NCBI GenBank assembly: GCA_021613535.1
Contig: CP075494.1
Coordinates: forward strand, 16,492,001-16,556,000
Source of the DNA: Adineta vaga
Lineage: Eukaryota > Animalia > Rotifera
DNA length: 64,000 bases
Direction: 5' to 3'
The notes beneath the pieces were generated by a model. It ran no database searches. It saw only the letters and a program-made list of their open reading frames with translations, and was not told the origin of the DNA. The position numbers and the translations under genes are program-made. Shown piece by piece: positions 2,485-51,796 of this stretch (the first letter of the stretch is position 1; every line of letters begins with the position of its first letter).

Positions 2485-3930
2485 TAATATTACAATGTAG
2501 AGAACTAGACGAAGTTTGTTCTTGTCATATATATTTGTAATGTTATCTACCATCTGTTACAACGATTTTGCTTATTATGTTGACAATCAGTCAATCAATA
2601 AAGTTTTAGACTTTTTATTTATCATATATCATAAATTTAATTTTTTACTATGGATCAGAACCTCAAGCAGACCAAGCTAAGCCTGTCTATCTAGTTTTTC
2701 CTATTATACCATAATGTTATATCATAAATCGAATATTTTCAAGGAAAAATATGCGGATGAATTTACTTTCAATGTTTATAATGAACTTGTATGCATTACA
2801 CTCCTACGTCAGAATGAAGAGTAAAAGATATTCATGAATAGTCAAGTCTCTTACTATTATAAAGAGTATACGGAAGCAAGCTCTTATACACATAACTATG
2901 ACTTGCTCATTAATACCCCTATGTTGTCAAACTCACTTACGGCCAAGTACTTTTCCTTCTGCAGACTTTCTAATGAATCACGGTCAATCTTCTTTTAATG
3001 TCAATATGTCACTCCGCACTCTTGTCTAGCGAATCCATTTGATACGGACGTACGGGAAATTCAAGACTTTACAGCTGTGTTCCTATATTTTTAATTTCTT
3101 TTTGATCTAAAGTATGACTATATTGCACAAAAATGATTAACTTATATCACTATATTCTGTTTCTGATCTTTTTGCAACGTAAATCCACAGCATTGAATGA
3201 AATCTTGTATCTTATGAATCCGCTGTTCCTTGTAACCGGTCGTTTCTTAGTCAGCAATTACATCTTGTCAATTATAAGCGATTTTTTGAGCGACAACGAA
3301 TAAAAATACCTTCAACAGCTAGAAAATATAGCATACAAAAACTGTCCTCTGTAACGAATCATTTCAAATATTTTCTCAGATTTTTACATTAGAATGTTTC
3401 TACTATGATCATCCTTTCGAATTGCAAGGAAGCATTTGATTATCATGAACTCACATAATCAATTTGCCAGCGATCTTTGTCATTATGATATTATCATAAG
3501 AATCAGACGAGCTCATACAGGCAGGCCAGGTCGAGTGGAAAATATGATAGGCGCAGGCAGGCTGCGCAGGATATAGACCTGTTATGAGCATGCCGGGCCT
3601 GCAAAATCATGACCTCTTTGAACCTTTGTTAAGTACACTTTTCATGAAACCATACTAGGTTTTGTAAAGAATCGAAAGGTTCACTATAGGGCTTGTCCAA
3701 ACGTAACGTTGTGACATTTTTGACATATTTTCATAGGATTTTCTCGAGCACCATAAATGCTAGAAGGTTCATTTAAATGTTGTTAGACACAACTCATTAA
3801 GCTCTACCAACGTTAGAAAAATCAAGAGTTGTGATACAAGTATCGTGCCTCTACAATGGTTTTATGGTCGCGTAACACCGTGACATAAAAGGACCCTAAA
3901 TTTCTAGTACGCTTATTTCCTTCTCCCGTT

Positions 3931-4131: not shown

Positions 4132-7100
4132 TTATATACAAGTCTTTAGTTTTTCGTGTATCATTCGATAGTAACGTCCACCATGTGCTAGTAGTTCTTC
4201 ATGAGTTCCTTGTTCAACAATCATTCCATCGTGTAAAACGCAAATCATATCTGCTTTTTGAATTGTTGATAAACGATGGGCAATTGTAATCGACGTTCGA
4301 TTTTGTTGAGCACGATCGAGTGCGTCTTGAACTAATTTTTCACTTTCAGTATCCAAAGCACTTGTGGCTAAAGGAAAATTTATCACATGAACTATACGCG
4401 CAAATTTTGTTCACCTATACCTTCGTCGAGAAGTAAGACTTTTGGATTTCGAAGCAATGCTCTTGCGATAGCTACAAATGGAACAAATCGATGATTAAAA
4501 GAAATATTTCACTCAATTTTATTTTACCAATTCGTTGTTTTTGACCACCAGATAACTGGACACCTTTCGCACCGCACATTGTCTCGTATCCCTTTGAATA
4601 GAGAAAAAAGAGAATAACGATGAAGAAATGAAATGAATGGTAATATACATGAGGAAGATTTTGAATAAAATCATGAATATTCGCACTTGTAGCTGCTTGA
4701 ATGATTTCAACAAGTGAAATATCCGTTCGACTATTATCACCATAAGCAATATTTTCACAAATTGTCATATCAAATAGAATTGGTTCTTGCGAAACAATAC
4801 TAACTAAAACAAATAATTGTAAAATCTATAGGAAATAACAGATTCTTCTTACTTTGTGATCGATACCATTGAAGATCAAGACTTCGAATATCTTTCGAGT
4901 CGACCAACTATAACATAGAAGAACAAAATCTATTAAAATTCACTTGAAAAAAAAAGATATTTACCAAACGACCAGCGTTTGTATCATAAAATCGTTCAAT
5001 CAATTGAGTTATGGTCGATTTTCCACAACCAGATGTACCTAAAGATAATAATAATAAACAATTCGTAATAGAATTATATCGTTACATACCAACGAGTGCA
5101 ATCTTTTGTCCTATAACAAAGAAAAAATATCATTAATGGATATGAATAAGAAGAAAACTTACCAGATTTAATATTTAATTTAAAATTTTTGAGAATCTTT
5201 GATTCTGGTCGAGTTGGGTAAACAAAACTAACATCGTCGAATTCAAATTGTCCTGTAAAATTCGACTAAAAACGGACACAGATTATTTTGGATAGTCTAT
5301 CCAAACTCACAATTCTTTCGCCCGTATTTGATTCATTATCAATCAATGGTTTCCGATTGATTAATTCGAATATTTTCTTAGCACCTTCGATTGCTCTTCC
5401 ATAATCCGGAGATCTATAAGATAAAATATGTTTTACTCTACATCTAAATCGAATCATTGAATTAACGTACAACATTAAAGTTTGAGAGACGAGATCGGTA
5501 ATATTGGCAACAGAATTATAAACCCTAAAAGAAAATCATTTCAATCATTGATTGACTGAAAAAATTTCATCTTACATGTACATATCTTCGAATGAAATCA
5601 TAGCTTTATGAACTAAAGAACTACTTAATGCAAGAAGAGCTGCCGAAGCGAAATTTGACGATGTAATTGATATTGAAGCACATAATGCCGAAAGATGAGA
5701 TCGTTTCACTTTTGATCTATAGAGGAAAACTTCGTTTTTTCTTTGTTTAAAAATCGAACAAAAAATAATTACTGATAAATAGTGTCAAGAAGATGAGAAT
5801 ATTCATCATAAAAATATGTTTCTTTGGCTAATTGAACTACAGTTCGAATATTTTGAATAGTTTCCATAGTTATCTATAATATAAAACATTGTCCATGTTA
5901 TACACATTGTTCAATTATGTTCAAACCTTTCCCGCATTGTCAACATATGGTTTATCTTTATGTTCAAATGCTGCTTCTACTCGCATTTGAAAATACGCAC
6001 CAAGTATAACTACAGGTATGAATGCCATCATCATCAAAGTTAATTGCCAAGAAAAAATAAATCCAATAAAAAGACCCATTCCCAATGATATAAATGTTTG
6101 ACAAACAAAACCAAAATGAACACCACTGGCACCTTGAACAGCCGATGCTTCTGTTGCTAAATGTGTACATAATGCACCTGTGCTATGCTTTGCGTCATCA
6201 AAATAACTCATATCTTGGCGCAGAATAGCTCGAAAAGCTTTCGATCGCAGACGTTTAGTCAAAATTTCACCCGAATAAGCAAACATATAACTCTAGAAAA
6301 AAAACGAGATATATGTCAAAACAAAATTCGATCGCTCTGTGGTTTACTTGAAGTATATGAAATACGAATGCGACAATTCCTAAACCAACGAAGAGTAAAG
6401 TATACATTAAAATGTGTTGATTTATAACGTCTTTGTCACATTCTTGATATAACTATTAAAGATTTATAGAGAATATTTTCAGCTAATTGAACATTAATTA
6501 CTTACCACAGTCATTTTTGTTCGGATTATAGCAAATGATGGTTGTATTGCTCCAGTAAACAAAGCTGCAATACATCCGATGATAATCAATATCCATTCAG
6601 TTTGATTTATTCGTAATATACTGATTATGATATTTGTATTCTTCTTCTAAAATAATCAAACTTTATCATAATATTTCTAATTCGTTTCATTACCTTTTCT
6701 TCAACATTCACAGTTGATATCGATGAATTTGCAATCACATCTAATTGTACATCATGAGTTTTACCACCCAAATCATTAGACGAAAGAATTTGTGTCGATT
6801 CTTTTTCTTCACTCTGAGGTAAAGTTTGTTGTTGAACAAGGTTGAAATATACACCTCGATCTTTCATCAACGAATTATGATCACCATCTTCAATGATTTG
6901 TCCTTTTTGTAAGACGATAATTCTATCAGCATTATAAATTGTCGATAAACGATGAGCGATGATCAACGTTGTTCGACCTATGCGAATATAACATTGATTT
7001 TAAGTTCAGAAAACGACTGATTAGATTTACCTTGAGCAGCATGATCTAAAGCGTCCTGAACTATCTTTTCACTTTCATTATCAAGTGCACTGGTAGCTAT

Positions 7101-9427
7101 AATAGAAATGGAAAAACAAAATTACACGACTGACAATTCGAAGATAAATTGTACCTTCATCAAGAAGTAAAATTTTCGGATTTCGAATGAGTGCTCGCGC
7201 AATAGCTATAAATAGAATATAAAGGAAATTAATAAATAGTATATGATGAGGTATATTTTTACTAACCAATTCTTTGTTTTTGCCCACCAGATAATGCAGT
7301 TCCATGTTCACCTACTTGGGTATCATATTTCTACATTGAATATAAATCCAAAAACTTAAACAAATGAAAATTTTTCCGAAAACTTACATCAGGCAAAGTC
7401 ATAATGAAATCATGTGCATTCGCCATCTTTGCTGCTTGAATAATTTCCGCTTCGGTTGCTGAATCACATCCCAATAAAATATTTTGACGAATAGTTGTAT
7501 GAAATAGAACTGGTTCCTGACTAACAACACCGATATGTTCTCGTAACCATACCAAATTATATTCATTAATGTCTTTGTCATCAATTGATATTGAACCGGA
7601 ATCGAGTTCATAAAATCGTTGTAATAATTGTACACATGTAGATTTTCCTGAGCCCGAACAACCAACAAGAGCAACTGTTTGACTAGATTGAACATCGAAT
7701 GATAGATTCGTAAGAATGGGAACATCTTGTCGTGATGGATAAGAAAAATTTACATTAGAAAAACGTATATGACCAATAAGATCATCCGTTGTTTTACTAA
7801 TCATTGAATCGTTAGTAATCTTCGATGGCTAGAAATGATACTATTAATTTTTTTGAAAATAAAAAAAATAAATTTACTTCATCAATAACTTTCTGTATTC
7901 GATAAGCAGCGACTTGAGCTTGAATTAAAGCTTGAAATTGTGGTGTAATATGTTGTAAAGTAAATACAGCATTGAAAATCGTTAGAAAAACCTGAAAAGA
8001 ATCTATTTGTCAGTATTTTCCTGATCTTCTCTTCATACATACAGTATAAACAATACCAATCGTATAATTTTCTTCTCGAATCAATTTTGCGCCATACCAA
8101 CATCCTTTGAATAAAAATTCAATAAGAAAAACAAATTTCAATTTAACCAATGTTACCTAATCCAAATAAACTATATACGAACAATAATTGTATAGCCATT
8201 GTGATGCCATTAATGATATTTTTCTTAATTGCACTTTTCTTTGCTTTATCAAGAGATTGTTCATAGCTAAATATAGAAATGAAAATTGATTTTTCTCTTC
8301 AAAATATTTTCTCTACAAACCGCTGTATTTCTTTTTCTTGTCCATTGTATGATAAAACAGTACGAATTGAACTAATAGCTTCCTCTGCAATGATTCCAGC
8401 ATTTCCATATGCTTTTAATTCAATCGCACTGAATTTTCTAATGATCTAATGAGAAATAAATATCACACATTTATTACAATAAAAAACAAATCTATTTTAC
8501 CATAGATGTGATTATGAATGACGTCAAGATAATCGGTAATGTGGATAATATGACTAATGCTAATTTCCATCCTTTAACAAAACCTAAACCATCGAAAATT
8601 TTCTTGATGAAAATATACAAAAAAATAACTTACTGATGACAATAGAACTGATGAGAGTTGCAAATGTGTGAACTAATGCACCGAATTTATCTCCGATTCC
8701 ATCGCGTATTTTCATAATATCATCAGTTAATAATAAATTAAGTTCACCAGTTTTATGAGTATCAAAATAAACAATATCTTTTTTCATGATTGATTGAAAT
8801 AGAATTTGACGAATTGTTCGAACTTGTCTTTCAGCTGTTATATTAAAAAATGTCACTCGGAAATAACAACAAAGAAATCCAATACAACTAATGATAATTA
8901 AATATATTGTTTGTTCACTCGTTTGATTTGTGAATGCTATATTAGTATGAGTGAAATTAGTTTCAGTCAAATTACATAATCTAAATTATTGTTTTAGATT
9001 AAAAACAATTTTATGTGAAAAAAAAAGTGTTCCTACGAGATTGATTTGTAAAAATTATTTGATGTTAATGTGATTCCTGGTGGACAATATTGTTGAGTAA
9101 GAGAAGTAAGATTAAATGGACATAGAGCAGTTTTTTGATTGATGAATGAATCAATTGAATTACCAAAAATAACCAAAAATAAAGGTTCAACAAGACCAAA
9201 TATCGTCGAACTGATAAATGCAAAGAGTAAATAAAGAGAATCAGTCAAAGTGGCATATCGAAACTGGAAGAGAGAGAGAAATGAAAATATATAATAGAAT
9301 AAATACAATTGTTTATTACCAAATGTAGAATGCTAACAGTTTGAATTGATTGTCTCTTCATACGATACCATTGGGCAATCATCGATTGTTTTTCATTTTT
9401 CTCCTTTGATACCATAATATTCGTCAT
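4132..9427 (-). CDS. ABCB1/P-glycoprotein-like full ABC exporter (TMD-NBD-TMD-NBD), many short introns
   Basis: Exon fragments give [29 protein letters not shown]1: [40 protein letters not shown]2: [29 protein letters not shown]2: [40 protein letters not shown] introns separate the fragments. The start is approximate because an acceptor-like site lies just upstream. Confidence 0.93.
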
Positions 9428-9856
9428 TTGTATTACAAGTTTCTAGAAACAAAATAAATTCAGAATATCAAAAATAGTTCTTTTATATTTGCGGGTTTTT
9501 CTTCTGTATTGTATAGGAATGAAATATAATGTTATGGAAGAAGTGACACAGCGTCTTTATATCTTTTCTCTTTCTATATAGTCTCGTCCTATTGAACATA
9601 AAACGCGTGATTGTCAAACAGAACGGGTTAAAATGTGACTGTTCTCTTTCAATGCACATGACGCTCATATTATATTTCTTTTTCTCCCACTCATAACCAC
9701 AACATCGATAACGATACATTATATAGATATGTGGGTTAGATCGACATTTGTATCGTATGATTCATGGGGAATTTCCACAATAACAATATTGTTCATATTC
9801 CTTTCACAAATATAAACGAGTATCGTATAATGTATAGGTGATGTGCCGATCAACAC

Positions 9857-9963
9857 CATGACGTCATGTGTATCCGTTTACGATACCTGGTACCTTTTTC
9901 CCTCAATCATGACTCATGTGTGTTTGTACAAGGTGTATCGAGGTCATTCTTTCGCTATTTAAA
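9857..9963. promoter_or_regulatory. Candidate bidirectional promoter with CRE, AP-1 and TATA-like elements
   Basis: CATGACGTCATG palindrome at 9857-9868 (TGACGTCA core), CATGACTCATG at 9908-9918 (TGACTCA core) and TATTTAAA at about 9956, within the ~580-nt gap between divergent start codons. Confidence 0.45.
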
Positions 9964-10008
9964 TAACCGATGATTTTTCATTAGCATCAACATTTCGATC
10001 AAACAATA

Positions 10009-11910
10009 ATGGAATTCAATCCCAGTCGCTATTATCTATTAGAATGTAGTAGAAAGCAAAGCATTGCTGATTTAAAATATGGCCGAGTGAATTGTCTTCG
10101 ACTACGAAATCAATCTCTACAAGATATGATTGATTTATCCTATGGATTAGGGACACCATTTAACGTCCATGAAAAAAATCGATCGAAATCATTAATTCGT
10201 AAAGTTACACCAGCAAAAGATCATGCACACGAAGAATCCGCCAATGGTAATGTCTATTTATCATATCATACTGAAAATCTCTCGCATTTAAAACCGCCAA
10301 ATTTCGTTGCACTATTTTGTGAACGAAAAGATCGAAATAATCAAGGTTATACTTTATTATCCACAATCGATGATATTAAAGAATTGTTAACCGAATCAGA
10401 AATTGAAATTTTATCAAGTGACAAGTTTACAGTTTATATTGAAGATTCACTGAACATCGATGGGATCAAAGCAGCTTTACCAACGAAAGTTCCTGTTTTT
10501 CGTGATAACAAAATGTTTTTTGATAATTTATTTATGGTTCCGGATGCAGATGCCGTCGATGCATTTGAAAAACTCAAACAAATTATCATTCAAGTTGAAA
10601 TGAAGATTCTATTAGAACCTGGAGATCTTTTAATTTTCAATAATTTCACATGTGTACATGGAAGAAGTGAATTTCATCCGAAATTCGATGGTCAAGATCG
10701 ATGTTTACATCGTTTACTTATTCTCGACGAATTCAATACTTCATCACCAGTTATTGAATTCGAAAAATATCCAGTCGTCATGAACAACAATATCTTAGAA
10801 ACGAACAATCAATTAACAATGAATTTAGCAAAAAAAAGTCTCAATAATACTGAAATCTTCATTCAAAAGATGAAAAAAGTTTGTATATTTGAAGTTGAAG
10901 GTGGATTTGATAAACATCACGCACCACACCGTCGTGAAATCGTCTTGATAAAAGATGCATTGAAAGCAAGAAATATTTATTCCGAAGTTGTATTCTACAA
11001 AGACGAAGATGCATATATTTATGATTATGTTGCATCAAATTTCGACTTTTGTTTAGTACGAATCAATCCAGAATTTTATCCAAGTTATACAAAAAGCAAA
11101 TTTTTCAAACTATTGACAAAATTTGAATCGAAAATCATTTGTCTTCCAACGGCAAATTCGATTGTTAATTTGGATAGTAAATCAATCATTTATTATATTC
11201 GAAATACGTTGTTTGGTATGGCAGATACGAATTTGTATACAAATATCAATGATTTTAAGAAGAATTTTCAATGTTATGAACAACGAGTCATCAAAGCAGA
11301 TCATAATGCAGAAGGACGAGGTGTTTTTCTTGTATCAAATCATTTGGAAGAAGAACCGGAGATAAAAACAAATCGGAAAAGTCATTATTTGAGAATTATT
11401 GAAGCTGCAACAAATAAGGAAGAAATCATGACCAAAGAAAACTTTGCTAAAGTTTTATTTAAGGAGAATTCTCAAATTCTTGATCAGAAATATCTTCAGA
11501 AAATTAAAGAAATGGAAATTCGTATAATGTTAATCGAAAAAAAGATTATTTGGATCATTGTTTTCATTCCGAAAAGTGAAGAATGGTTGGCGAATGGCGA
11601 TGGAATCTATTATGAACCATCTAAATGGCCAAATCTTTGTAAACAAATGACGAATTGGTTACCTCAATTAGAGAAATATCTTCAAACAAAAAATTGCAAA
11701 CTTCCATTCTTATGGAGTGCAGACTTTATCATGCAAGACGATGATCATCATTATGATAGTTCACAAGATATTTGTGAATATGCTGACAAAGCTCAATTTG
11801 TTTTATCTGAAATTAATTGTTCGTGTCTTGGCTTTCGGCAAAATTCATCACAACCAAATGTGGCATTGGATATCGCAGAAGCCATTTTCAATATGTCCAC
11901 TGTAATATAA
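10009..11910 (+). CDS. Fusion of a TauD/clavaminate-synthase-like Fe(II)/2OG dioxygenase and a Cj0069-like ATP-grasp domain, intronless
   Basis: N-terminal half: LGTP..E..LIRKVTP...ESANGNVYLSYHTE (H-x-E) and LEPGDLLIFNNFTCVHGRSEFHPKFDGQDRCLHR (distal His, 2OG-binding Arg). C-terminal half: IFEVEGGFDK, RINP, RVIKADHNAEGRGVFLV, DQKYLQKIKEMEIR, LPFLWSADFI, LSEINCSCLGF. Confidence 0.85.
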   Translation: MEFNPSRYYLLECSRKQSIADLKYGRVNCLRLRNQSLQDMIDLSYGLGTPFNVHEKNRSKSLIRKVTPAKDHAHEESANGNVYLSYHTENLSHLKPPNFVALFCERKDRNNQGYTLLSTIDDIKELLTESEIEILSSDKFTVYIEDSLNIDGIKAALPTKVPVFRDNKMFFDNLFMVPDADAVDAFEKLKQIIIQVEMKILLEPGDLLIFNNFTCVHGRSEFHPKFDGQDRCLHRLLILDEFNTSSPVIEFEKYPVVMNNNILETNNQLTMNLAKKSLNNTEIFIQKMKKVCIFEVEGGFDKHHAPHRREIVLIKDALKARNIYSEVVFYKDEDAYIYDYVASNFDFCLVRINPEFYPSYTKSKFFKLLTKFESKIICLPTANSIVNLDSKSIIYYIRNTLFGMADTNLYTNINDFKKNFQCYEQRVIKADHNAEGRGVFLVSNHLEEEPEIKTNRKSHYLRIIEAATNKEEIMTKENFAKVLFKENSQILDQKYLQKIKEMEIRIMLIEKKIIWIIVFIPKSEEWLANGDGIYYEPSKWPNLCKQMTNWLPQLEKYLQTKNCKLPFLWSADFIMQDDDHHYDSSQDICEYADKAQFVLSEINCSCLGFRQNSSQPNVALDIAEAIFNMSTVI

Positions 11911-13411
11911 AACTGAGTTTTTCTACGCACATGTAAAAATGTACACAGCGATTCATCTGGATTTTTCTGCGTGGATGACTTGTCTTTTTTTGTTAATTGA
12001 ATAAATCACAGCATAAAATTAGTTCTTGAGGAAAAAGACATAGTTTTAGTTGAACATAGATATCAATGTATATGTGATTTATAATTAAGCAAGATCAAAA
12101 TAAATCTATTTCTAACAATTTCTATTTTCACAAGGAGAACATTGGAAATACTCTATAAATGCATCAAATTAAAACTACATCTAGTCCTAATATATATTCA
12201 AAGTCGTATAAGGCATCGCATGGCTTCGCGAGGAAAAACGACGTTCGTATGTTGTTGTTTTTTTCAACAAAATATATTTATCATGTGAAAAAATATACTT
12301 CATTACCTGTACAAACATCGTTTATATGCGTACAAAAGTATATTTTTCGACGTAGTAAATACACGTTTTGTTGGAAAAAACAACATAAGAACGATCGTTT
12401 CTTATCGATTTTATCTATCTGGATATTAGTCAAATTTCGTTGAGATGATCATTTGTAAGAATATGTCCATAAGATAGGAAAATTTCAGAGATAAAAATAG
12501 ACACAATTCTGTTTTTTATTCTACCTAAATCTTGAGGTTATGTGAGGTGATAAAACGGACTCAAAAAAATCCCTTATACTATCATCCACCGTTGTTTAGG
12601 TTTTATATTTCGACAACACGAACCCATGGAATGTCTAAAAAACGTTACATATGTGAACTATACTAAAATGTACTTTTGAATTGATCATGACTTGACCAAT
12701 TCTTTGGTATTTGATTGTCGTCTTCATAATATTCTGCTGAAATTTTATTGAATAAATTCGTGTTCTCTAAAACATAGTTTGCGAGTAACACTAATATTAA
12801 TCATAGCCTGTCGTTCTTATTCAAATGCTAATACCATCGAGATTTTTCTTAATTTTTCATTACTATTAAATACATCTTGCGAAGATAAATAGATCTATGA
12901 TGAATAGATGACTTAGGCATTTTGCGTTTTAATCTTGTAACTCAATTCATGAAAATAAAAAAGTGATTCTCTCGGACATTTATTAAAAATAGTTTTATCA
13001 GGTTTTTTTTATTATCATTATCGACGAAATATTATATAAGACGAAAAGAAAGAGATGAGATTTCAAGGTTATTTAATGTGTGATGTAACCAGTACAACAC
13101 AATAATAATAAAAAGCTGAGGTTGTTGTGTAACTGTTTCGTTTTCTGTTAATAAAAAAAAGGTAGGTTTATTTTTACCTTTTCAACGTCGATACAGAGTA
13201 GTGTTATACAACAGCATCTTATGTAACGAATGTTTTTTTGAATAGTTTTCGTACTTTGATTGATAAAGGTGGACTTTTCTTTCTATGTTAATGTCAAATA
13301 CAAGATTATGCTAAATAAATATCTCTTCCTACAAGTATATATATACACAGGTAAATCGTTTGATATATTTATCTGTTCATTTACTCGTCGATTTCAAAAG
13401 AAGAAATAATT

Positions 13412-41611: not shown

Positions 41612-42808
41612 TTATAAAATACAAGTTTCATTTTCACCTACAAGCCACAAGTAATTTTTTTCCATTAATTCTAATTTATCTTTAACCCATGAATTGAAAT
41701 GAATGATAAACGGTCGAAAGAAAGGATTGATTTTTTGAAGTTGAATTATTTCATTCCAATATTGATTATTTAATGAACCAAATATATGTCCATTTATATA
41801 AGATCTTTGATCTAACAAACGTAATTTAATCGAATTATTTGTTTTTATACTTGTATTTTTTCGTTTTAATCCTAATGGAAATGGTTCAACAAGCCAAGTA
41901 CGAGAAGAATCATAAAGAAATTTATTATTTAAAGAATCGTAACGATTATTTAAAAGTAAATCCATTGTCCATTGATCATTTGCTTTTGAATCAATTATTA
42001 TTATTTTATTTAAATCATTAAGTAAATCAATCGTTGGTTTTGTAGGACGCATAAGAAAAAATCCACCACATATTGGTGGTACAAAAGGTTTTCCTTCAAA
42101 TGGATCTTTTAATTGATTATAGAAATTTCGAGCATCTGTACTATAAATTAAATCTTCAATTTCATGACGATCTTCATTGAAAAAAAGATCATTTAATGGA
42201 TCATTCAAAAAAACAATATCAGCATCCATAAAAATAAATGAAAGATGAAATTGTTCAAGAAATAATAAATAAATTGATATTCTATGACGCATTAATTCAT
42301 AAAATCCATCCGTTCCAATATCTTGTATAGTTTTAATTTGATCAAATTTTGAATGAAAATAATAAATGCCAAATGAAAGATTATTTTTATCTCGATAAGA
42401 TTCTAAATCTTTAACAGCAGATTGATCTATTGCCCAAAAAATCAATTTTTTTGCAAGTAAATCTGCATGAGCTTTTCGTAATGAACATAAAAGATTATAA
42501 GCTACAGATAACATATCACTATTAACTTGAACAATTGCAATTGTACCAGGTCGAAGAAAATAATCAGAAAATGACATATCACCAACAAGAACAGGAGAAT
42601 ACCATGATGAAAAATTATTACTCGAATCTATGAAAATATAATTCAATTTTTAAAAGAAAAAATATTTATTTCCTTTTTTCATTTTCAACATACTTAAAGA
42701 ATGATTTGATACGGATAAAGATCGAGTGAATAATTCCATATGAAGAAATCCAGAAGAGATAAAAACAAAAATTAAACATATTGAAAATAAATAAATAAAA
42801 CGCCGCAT
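41612..42808 (-). CDS. Nucleotide-diphospho-sugar transferase (GT-A, GT77/Nucleotid_trans-like), type II membrane
   Basis: Exon 1 (42808-42694) MRRFIYLFSICLIFVFISSG..., phase-1 intron 42693-42628, then the FMDADIVFLNDP DxD motif, ICGGFFLMRPT, NDQ and IIHFN. Confidence 0.88.
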
Positions 42809-50080: not shown

Positions 50081-51796
50081 ATGCTGCACAACTTAGCGTT
50101 TAAACAATTTGTTGCTCTGTTAACAGTGATTGTTTACAGTTTTGTAATTGATAAAACCGCAGCAGTATATATATTCAACAACGCTGACCATGAAATGACG
50201 TTAAAAGAACAAAAGAGTTCAGACTCTTTTGTTGGTCGATCTAAGTATGTAATGTTTTAGTTATAATATTTAGTAGTCTGTCTTTTAACTTCTCTTAAAT
50301 CTAATGTATAAGTAACGTTTGTCTTTTCGACTTGCTCGATTCTCGACTAAATCCAATCTCTGTAACTCCTATTATTTTCTAACAGATTCTATTCCGAACT
50401 AACGTCAAATTCTATTCAATAGTAGCCGACCACCGAAATGAAATCAAGGATAATTTGATTTAAAATCTGCCATTCTTTTTTCGATCATGTCGTTCACATG
50501 GAGTAGGCCATAGTCGATCGTCAATGTCCTTATGATCCATCACTTTCACCTATTCGATTTTCTAAATAATGCTCATACAATATCATTTATTGTTTCATTT
50601 TTTCTTCATGAAGCACTAAAAATGTTGACTGTGGTTCATACAATGCATCATTCTACACCTGCTGCAATGGAGCACTCACTTTGGGACATAATCAATCGTG
50701 TTGTGGTACAACAGCCTACAATGCGTCAATGCATACCTGTTGCAACGGCGTATTCACTTTAGGAAGCCGACAATCGTGTTGTGGCACGACAGCTTACAAC
50801 CCATCAATGTATACCTGTTGTAATGGAGCACTCATATTGGACAAAGGATTATCATGTTGTGGCGCAACGGTGTACAATTCATCAATGTACACGTGCTGCA
50901 ATGGCGAAGTCAATAGCAGAAGCAATCAAAAGTGTTGTGGTTCAAAAGTCTATAATCCGTCATCTTACACCTGCTGTAACGGTACACTCACTAGTGGAAG
51001 CTATCAAGAGTGTTGTGGAACCAAAGGTTACTATCCGTCATTGTCTACTTGTTGCGACGGCGAACTTACTAGCGGAGGTAATCAAAAATGTTGTGGTACC
51101 GAATCCTATAATCCATTGTCCTCCACTTGCTGCAATGGCATACTCAACAATGGGGCTCGTCAAGAATGTTGTGGTACGAAAACTTATAATCCATCCTCTC
51201 ATACTTGCTGCAATGGCGAAGTCGTAAGCGGAAGCAATGAAAAATGTTGTGGTACAAAAGCCTATAATCCATCATCTTCTACATGTTGCAATGGTGAACT
51301 TAATAGTGGAGGTTATCTAGAATGTTGCGGCTCTAAAGGTTTTTCTAAATCATCCTCTACTTGCTGTAATGGTACACTCACCAGTGGAGGTTACCTTGAA
51401 TGTTGTGGCTCTAAAGGTTTTTCTAAATCATCCTCTACTTGCTGTAATGGTACACTCACCAGTGGAGGTTACCTTGAATGTTGTGGCTCTAAAGGTTATT
51501 CTAAATCATCCTCTACTTGCTGTAATGGTGAACTCACCAGTGGAGGTTATTTAGAATGTTGTGGCTCTAAAGGTTTTTCTAAATCATCCTCTACTTGCTG
51601 TAATGGTACACTCACCGCTGGAGGTTATCTAGAATGTTGTGGCTTCAAAGGTTACTCACGATCGTCTTCCACTTGCTGTAATAGTACAGTTAACAGTGGA
51701 GCTTATCAAGATTGTTGTGGTACCAAAAGCTACTCTAAATCGTTCTCCACTTGTTGCAATGGTGAAGTCCTTCGCGGAAATGCTTTAAAATGTTAA
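50081..51796 (+). CDS. Secreted di-cysteine repeat (galaxin-like) protein, ~448 aa
   Basis: Exon 1 (50081-50244) has the signal-like MLHNLAFKQFVALLTVIVYSFVI. A phase-2 join to 50614 is followed by about 14 repeats of the 26-aa unit CCGxxxYxxxxxTCCNGxLxxGxxxx. Intermediate exons cannot be excluded. Confidence 0.8.

Follow-up and report, generated by a model that had tools for sequence, protein, structure and literature searches.

Does an animal genome hold a foreign biosynthetic enzyme and a pump of its own that are kept together as one unit? This question is raised by a pair of genes in the bdelloid rotifer Adineta vaga, located about 0.43 Mb from the end of contig C5 (16.93 Mb long), within a stretch of 64,000 nucleotides (C5:16,492,001-16,556,000; hereafter the window, with positions given in its own numbering unless a contig or locus is named). 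The genome searched was the A. vaga assembly of 100.8 Mb in six contigs. On the plus strand, the gene at 10009-11910 encodes an oxygenase fused to an ATP-grasp ligase, while an ABCB1/P-glycoprotein-type transporter gene runs on the minus strand (4132-9427), head-to-head with it. The first-pass annotation had described a divergent pair with a gap of about 580 nt, and the two start codons are indeed 582 nt apart. It had also proposed that a foreign enzyme making a modified small peptide was paired with a host exporter, which is the idea weighed here.

The adjacency is not unique to this assembly. At two other loci, L004 and L006, both on bdelloid-like contigs with synonymous divergence (dS) above 1, a divergent ABCB gene is located upstream of the fusion gene, as in the window. 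The orthology of the ABCB genes, and their presence or absence, was judged exon by exon against five A. vaga paralogues. The ABCB gene of L004 was 59-95% identical per exon to the window gene and closer to it than any of the five paralogues in most exons, clearly so in the exons of the transmembrane domains (TMDs); for exon 16 the value was 0.84, with the paralogues at most 0.61. For exon 2 of the L006 gene it was 0.64 (paralogues at most 0.55), and exon 3 of this gene is cut by the contig end. Judged by these exon comparisons, the ABCB genes of the window, L004 and L006 are orthologues.

The outer neighbours differ at all three paired loci. In the window, the pair is next to a fasciclin gene. 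In L004 it is flanked by two actins and by a third gene, the A. vaga orthologue of which is at C4:9.48 Mb; the A. vaga pair has no actin within 5 Mb of it. In L006 the neighbour is Piezo, which maps to C1/C4 in A. vaga. Synteny is detectable at this divergence, as a control showed: in L005, a locus with a fusion gene and no pump, the RhoGEF-Na/K-ATPase block was syntenic with A. vaga C6:1.47 Mb. The pair shows the conserved physical linkage of non-homologous genes that is used to define a gene cluster, and in the three loci it has stayed together while its genomic place changed, which suggests a make-and-export unit. In L004, a 136-nt inverted repeat (80%; L004:8659-8983) lies between the ABCB gene and the promoter, and is possibly a small transposon.

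Single-exon searches detected approximately 15-19 ABCB-type genes in the A. vaga genome, therefore a single adjacency alone would not be beyond chance. This number also offers many chances for another explanation, in which a foreign gene hitch-hikes beside an inducible ABCB gene, with both belonging to a basic leucine zipper (bZIP) stress regulon and the pump not carrying the product of the enzyme. The gap of 0.6-1.5 kb would seldom be broken and a short promoter would keep the genes joined on moving, which also fits. We consider such hitch-hiking to be on the unlikely side, and the promoter and the copies of the fusion gene without a pump bear on it from both sides.

The 581-nt divergent intergenic region (9428-10008) is a candidate bidirectional promoter. 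Facing the ABCB gene there is a putative TATAAA box-like site, read from the sequence (9556-9561, minus strand), and, on the same side, an imperfect cAMP response element (CRE)/activator protein 1 (AP-1)-like site with a weak motif match (9659-9667). A CRE palindrome, TGACGTCA (9859-9866), recognised by motif and conservation, is located in a 21-nt block (9853-9873) that the window and L004 share at 95% identity. It is followed by an AP-1-like TGACTCA (9910-9916) in a segment (9909-9926, plus strand) that matches 17 of 18 positions upstream of the solo copy in L005, and by a TATA-like site, also read from the sequence, facing the fusion gene (9956-9963, plus strand); TATA boxes were found at similar places in L005, L006, L008 and L120. 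The palindrome TGACGTCA was present in all three intergenic regions of the paired loci and absent upstream of the solo copies; its shuffle probability was 0.02-0.04 in each, a post hoc value for regions that are homologous and so not independent. The 10-mer form of the CRE was 4-fold enriched genome-wide (248 vs 61 for the control). From these motif matches, the two genes putatively share a bZIP-type promoter. The AP-1-like element is common to the solo copies and is therefore part of the enzyme gene's own promoter.

That the solo fusions carry their own AP-1/TATA promoter is in line with hitch-hiking, as is the upstream region of an ABCB paralogue (C5:16.15 Mb), which has CRE and AP-1 sites without an enzyme partner. 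Hitch-hiking is less easily reconciled with L006, where a 214-nt block containing the CRE, two AP-1 sites and TATA occurs twice, inverted, with one copy facing each gene, so that the promoter block was duplicated whole toward both genes and kept at 93% identity. This inverted repeat was also considered as a miniature inverted-repeat transposable element, which was rejected in part: inspection by eye showed no target-site duplication, and the promoter motifs follow one another in the arms as they do in the window.

The copies without the pump are all degenerate. The pump was present in 3/3 copies with both active sites intact, and none of the four pump-less copy types (0/4) was doubly intact. 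In all cases observed, a copy that had lost the pump had also lost one of the enzyme activities, which argues against hitch-hiking. L005 has an E89K change in the iron triad and an intact ligase. L007, L120 and L121 are occurrences of a single 2-kb cassette (97-98% identical) at three sites; their fusion gene stops near residue 385, as does that of L008. In these truncated copies the oxygenase is conserved, with a ratio of nonsynonymous to synonymous divergence (dN/dS) of 0.04, and the ligase remnant is relaxed (0.35). L039 is an L004-type actin site without ABCB and without the oxygenase half, containing a frameshifted ligase remnant. In the tree, the solo copies L005/L007/L008 form one clade (support 96) beside the L004 gene (79), which fits the pairing being ancestral and then lost. 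The losses in this clade are complementary, oxygenase-only in some copies and an intact ligase with E89K in the other, so that the fusion may be splitting into its parts. L007 forms one end of a 23-kb contig and L121, inverted relative to it, forms the other.

The pump itself is intact. Exon modelling gave a gene with 28 exons from the ATG at 9427 to the stop at 4132, encoding a full transporter of 1283 aa (TMD-NBD-TMD-NBD, NBD being the nucleotide-binding domain) with no internal stop, exons of at least 17 aa having been re-examined singly for stops. All 27 introns are GT-AG and 45-61 nt long, and both NBDs have a complete motif set (Walker A, LSGGQ, DEATSALD, H-loop). Its assignment rests on this model, on exon 16, whose best matches were human ABCB4/ABCB1 (E 1e-48), and on the orthologues in L004 and L006, and the first-pass description of an intron-rich eukaryotic P-glycoprotein was correct. 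A further upstream exon is possible, with an AG acceptor near 9446. It was also considered whether all close ABCB paralogues serve enzyme neighbours; this was ruled out, as the five paralogues have no common pattern. Two ABCB paralogues have neighbours to be mentioned. A fatty-acid-synthase/polyketide synthase (PKS)-like gene with a ketoacyl synthase domain (C4:3,634,400-3,639,000; L016:903-5478) is divergent and about 2.7 kb upstream of the close paralogue at C4:3.64 Mb, making a possible second enzyme-pump pair, and an open reading frame (ORF) that is TauD-type dioxygenase-like by eye (C3:14.277 Mb; L014:3-695) is about 7.5 kb upstream of the paralogue at C3:14.29 Mb.

On the other side of the promoter, the fusion gene is one ORF of 633 aa in which no intron is required, and it matches both domain families, confirming the oxygenase-ligase fusion. 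The compact clavaminate synthase (CAS)-like Fe(II)/2-oxoglutarate (2OG) oxygenase domain covers aa 1-250 (10009-10758, plus strand), by domain and structure matches. The N-terminal approximately 250 aa match clavaminate synthases, the asparagine oxygenase AsnO and lysine 3-hydroxylase (E 1e-19 to 4e-13), and residues ~42-245 match clavaminate synthase/AsnO/KDO structures (E 1e-19). Alignment to CAS/AsnO located the iron triad H87-T-E89...H217 and the 2OG arginine R231, and H87, E89, H217 and R231 are invariant among the fusion copies, except for E89K in L005. E55, N90 and R235 match E125, N158 and R305 of AsnO, which we take to be pocket residues. D172 aligns with AsnO D241 after subtracting a 24-residue tag offset, and in AsnO the D241N change makes Asp the substrate in place of Asn (PMC9968057). 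The domain is predicted to oxidise an amino acid.

The domain shares with clavaminate synthase, AsnO, KDO1 and VioC the H-x-E...H triad, the 2OG arginine and the equivalents of the D241/R305 pocket residues, but it is only ~30% identical to them, approximately 50-90 residues shorter at the N-terminus, fused to a ligase and far under the cut-offs of the named equivalogs (score/cut-off in bits: Cs1 98/450, GntD 81/345, VioC 62/419). The short N-terminus resembles stand-alone forms of 250-280 aa in viral contigs. Such compact CAS-like oxygenases were frequent in IMG/VR contigs (179 matches; L124-L203), and a second, distant stand-alone CAS-like ORF with ~30% identity to the fusion's oxygenase was found in A. 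vaga itself (L002, C3:13,612,889-13,613,377; 334-aa frame).

The Cj0069/DUF6815 ATP-grasp domain occupies aa 288-633 (10870-11910, plus strand). Residues 290-624 pass NF033816 (Cj0069) marginally (152.5 vs 150 bits), and the PF20668 cut-off is passed as well (63.5/28 bits). A model of this domain alone, made from a 44-sequence alignment, had a predicted local distance difference test score (pLDDT) of 91.5 and showed a complete three-subdomain ATP-grasp fold (the full-length AlphaFold model had a pLDDT of 39). K391, K429, D492, E503, R505, D572 and E601-x-N603 are invariant in the six full-length fusions, and the usual ATP/Mg ligands of the fold (Lys, Lys, Asp and E-x-N) are among them. The domain is thus like the Cj0069 family in passing the cut-off and in having the full fold with these ligands; it differs in its ~30% identity, long branch and signature loops that are off the family consensus. 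Members of the family detected here came from Campylobacter, Corynebacterium, Bacteroidota, an alga and a giant-virus-like contig. Based on the model, ATP-dependent amide formation is predicted, bearing in mind that kinases and synapsin use the same fold.

The nearest fold in the search was DcsG (Z 23.1, root-mean-square deviation 3.1, 280 aligned), followed by ArgX (Z 22.0), GshB (Z 21.5), LysX and RimK. That RimK, LysX and ArgX are within ranks 2-5 could point to protein or peptide modification, with RimK/LysX-like tailing plus residue hydroxylation unrelated to export. We regard this as very improbable, as the oxygenase is of a class (CAS) that acts on small molecules, a non-exhaustive search of the three paired loci showed no conserved ORF for a small precursor, and the linkage would be left unexplained. 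The same closeness to glutathione synthetase and to the RimK/ArgX glutamyl-transfer enzymes could also fit a phase I-II-III detoxification cassette, in which an amino-acid-like toxin from food microbes or fungi is oxidised, conjugated by the ATP-grasp domain and expelled by the ABCB. The gene anatomy would be the same, and xenobiotic responses typically involve P-glycoproteins and elements of the AP-1/CRE type. However, those CAS-like relatives that have been characterised are biosynthetic and narrow in scope, oxidising amino acids, and the gene is single copy with no expanded detoxification family, therefore detoxification seems unlikely to us.

The fusion gene appears to be maintained. Against five relatives, the window gene had dS of approximately 1.0-1.9 and dN/dS of 0.06-0.16, indicating purifying selection, and a pseudogene was ruled out by dN/dS of 0.06-0.15. 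Contamination was ruled out by the chromosome-scale contig, a GC content of 31% as in the flanks, and orthologues beside intron-rich genes in other samples. An AATAAA polyadenylation-like signal, read from the sequence, is located 90 nt past the stop (12000-12005, plus strand). The homoeologous copy suggested for comparison by the first-pass annotation was not found in the A. vaga genome, where the fusion gene is single copy.

Where the fusion came from can be answered in part. A word search found seven other fusion-related proteins, five of them 70-79% identical and two 55% identical; the five were assigned to bdelloid-type contigs by inference from shared intron positions and synteny. In a hidden Markov model (HMM) search, all fusions grouped in a single cluster at 50%, the 150 best representatives included no further protein with both domains, and the relatives of the separate domains were ~30% identical. 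Of the 55% relatives, L009 is on an AT-rich contig where the neighbouring gene, of the F-box/FNIP type, is similar to giant-virus proteins, and L010-L013 are transcript-sized contigs from four runs. Neither domain had a resolved sister group in the trees. A bacterial operon origin was rejected, as none of the bacterial loci examined had the two domains fused or adjacent. No adjoining Cj0069 gene was found at 80 viral CAS-like genes, pattern scans of JGI metagenomes and IMG/VR gave no match to the fusion, and a Cj0069 gene was not found in IMG/VR.

Because of the unresolved sister groups and the lack of a bacterial fusion or adjacency, the fusion gene is, on phylogenetic grounds, foreign to animals and was probably formed before it reached bdelloids. 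The first-pass description of an intronless, bacterial-looking enzyme was right about the missing introns and the domain families, but no bacterium was found to have the fusion, which was probably not acquired whole from one, its only outside relatives being on eukaryote- or giant-virus-type contigs. A giant-virus origin is hinted at by the neighbours of L009 and of P0022, a Cj0069-family gene beside RPB10 and an A32-like packaging ATPase (L122:425-4946; probably a giant virus), while the trees do not group the fusion with viral sequences.

We tentatively favour a co-induced two-gene module of amino-acid oxidation, ligation into a small amide and export, at slightly less than an even chance. 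It rests on the intact pump and bifunctional enzyme, the head-to-head linkage in three neighbourhoods, the bZIP-type motifs and purifying selection. Using Fe(II), 2OG and O2, the oxygenase would hydroxylate an L-amino acid that has a nitrogen-bearing side chain, either free or as a small amide, because D172 and R235, the equivalents of AsnO D241 and R305, are kept. The ATP-grasp domain would make an acyl-phosphate of a carboxylate and couple this to an amine, so that a small (pseudo)dipeptide is formed and no nonribosomal peptide synthetase (NRPS) is needed; the two steps could occur in either order. A stress or infection signal acting through the CRE/AP-1 sites would induce both genes, and the ABCB would secrete the product or protect the producer. 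The fusion would most likely have arisen outside bdelloids, entered once, gained an AP-1/TATA promoter and settled by the ABCB gene.

Several points weigh against this module. P-glycoproteins usually prefer amphipathic substrates, not small polar dipeptides. The two non-bdelloid fusions have no pump nearby, on contigs that are short, and no CAS-like oxygenase was found within 6 kb at 160 bacterial or metagenomic Cj0069 loci. No substrate for any Cj0069-family member was found in the part of the literature searched. The pump-less copies are not independent: L005/L007/L008 form one clade and come from one sample at 4-6x coverage, and the four copy types together represent about two independent losses. 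The sample of copies is small, and E89K is a single base change. The pairing of enzyme and exporter proposed by the first-pass annotation is partly supported by the linkage, the conserved CRE, the degenerate pump-less copies and purifying selection, while other readings fit the same data.

The kind of pairing is already known, because in A. ricciae ABCB1 genes flank PKS-NRPS clusters and are co-upregulated with them (Nowell et al. 2024, PMC11258130). In both bdelloids, an ABCB1 of host type lies next to a biosynthetic gene that was acquired horizontally. The A. ricciae clusters have a large PKS-NRPS core, measured co-expression and ABCB1/major facilitator superfamily genes that merely flank, whereas the A. 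vaga enzyme has two domains and is NRPS-independent, and its gene forms with the pump gene a tight divergent pair that has been kept in several lineages, with co-regulation predicted from motifs. The searchable supplements of that study, with large tables covered in part, contained no mention of clavaminate, TauD or Cj0069.

In fungi, the E-64 cassette combines the Fe/2OG oxygenase Cp1A and the ATP-grasp enzyme Cp1B to make a pseudodipeptide without an NRPS (PMC12568646), by analogy with which the product of the fusion is predicted. These are separate genes plus an amide-bond synthetase, and Cp1B resembles homoglutathione synthetase, whereas the fusion's ligase is of the Cj0069 family. A gene or genes for a pyridoxal phosphate-dependent decarboxylase lie ~7 kb from the oxygenase-only copy in L008 (L008:10565-12516), and E-64 clusters hold one too, probably by chance. 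AnkG, proposed to add L-Asp by an amide bond in the NK13650 pathway (PMC12568646), has ATP-grasp and TauD-clan domains in one chain (AnkG_N + TauD cluster; feature score only 0.83, a lead). It has 792 aa, and AnkG_N, the ligase by Pfam name, is N-terminal to TauD, while the fusion's ligase is C-terminal and Cj0069-type. Word and HMM searches gave no sequence match between AnkG and the fusion; the missing AnkG_N hit is not evidence, because the Pfam version scanned may predate PF28486. The literature searched contained no description of the fusion architecture, its NRPS-independent chemistry, the relocated conserved pair or the mirrored promoter. For DUF6815/NF033816 no paper was found, and a search of titles and abstracts gave six mentions of Cj0069, all in passing.

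Elsewhere in the window, a self-inverted 165-nt element (12236-12400) lies directly downstream of the fusion gene, with an apparently similar symmetric stretch at ~3490-3600. A 371-aa cysteine-rich repeat ORF with CCG/CCN units (50681-51796) and a 344-aa ORF with a DAD motif, by eye like a nucleotide-diphospho-sugar transferase (41612-42646), were also observed.

In its fullest form, the locus could be a minimal, mobile, NRPS-independent cluster built by an animal, in which a fusion of protist or giant-virus origin and the animal's own P-glycoprotein share one bZIP-inducible bidirectional promoter and secrete an undescribed modified dipeptide, giving the first Cj0069 function; this is doubtful as a whole. 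In microbes and fungi, metabolic clusters routinely include an exporter of their own; in animals such clusters are barely documented. A two-gene unit surviving relocation would be an unusually tractable case of the domestication of a foreign enzyme, with its regulation and export. Because a member of the uncharacterised Cj0069 ATP-grasp family is joined here to an amino-acid oxygenase, a single protein of 633 aa could reveal the chemistry of the family.

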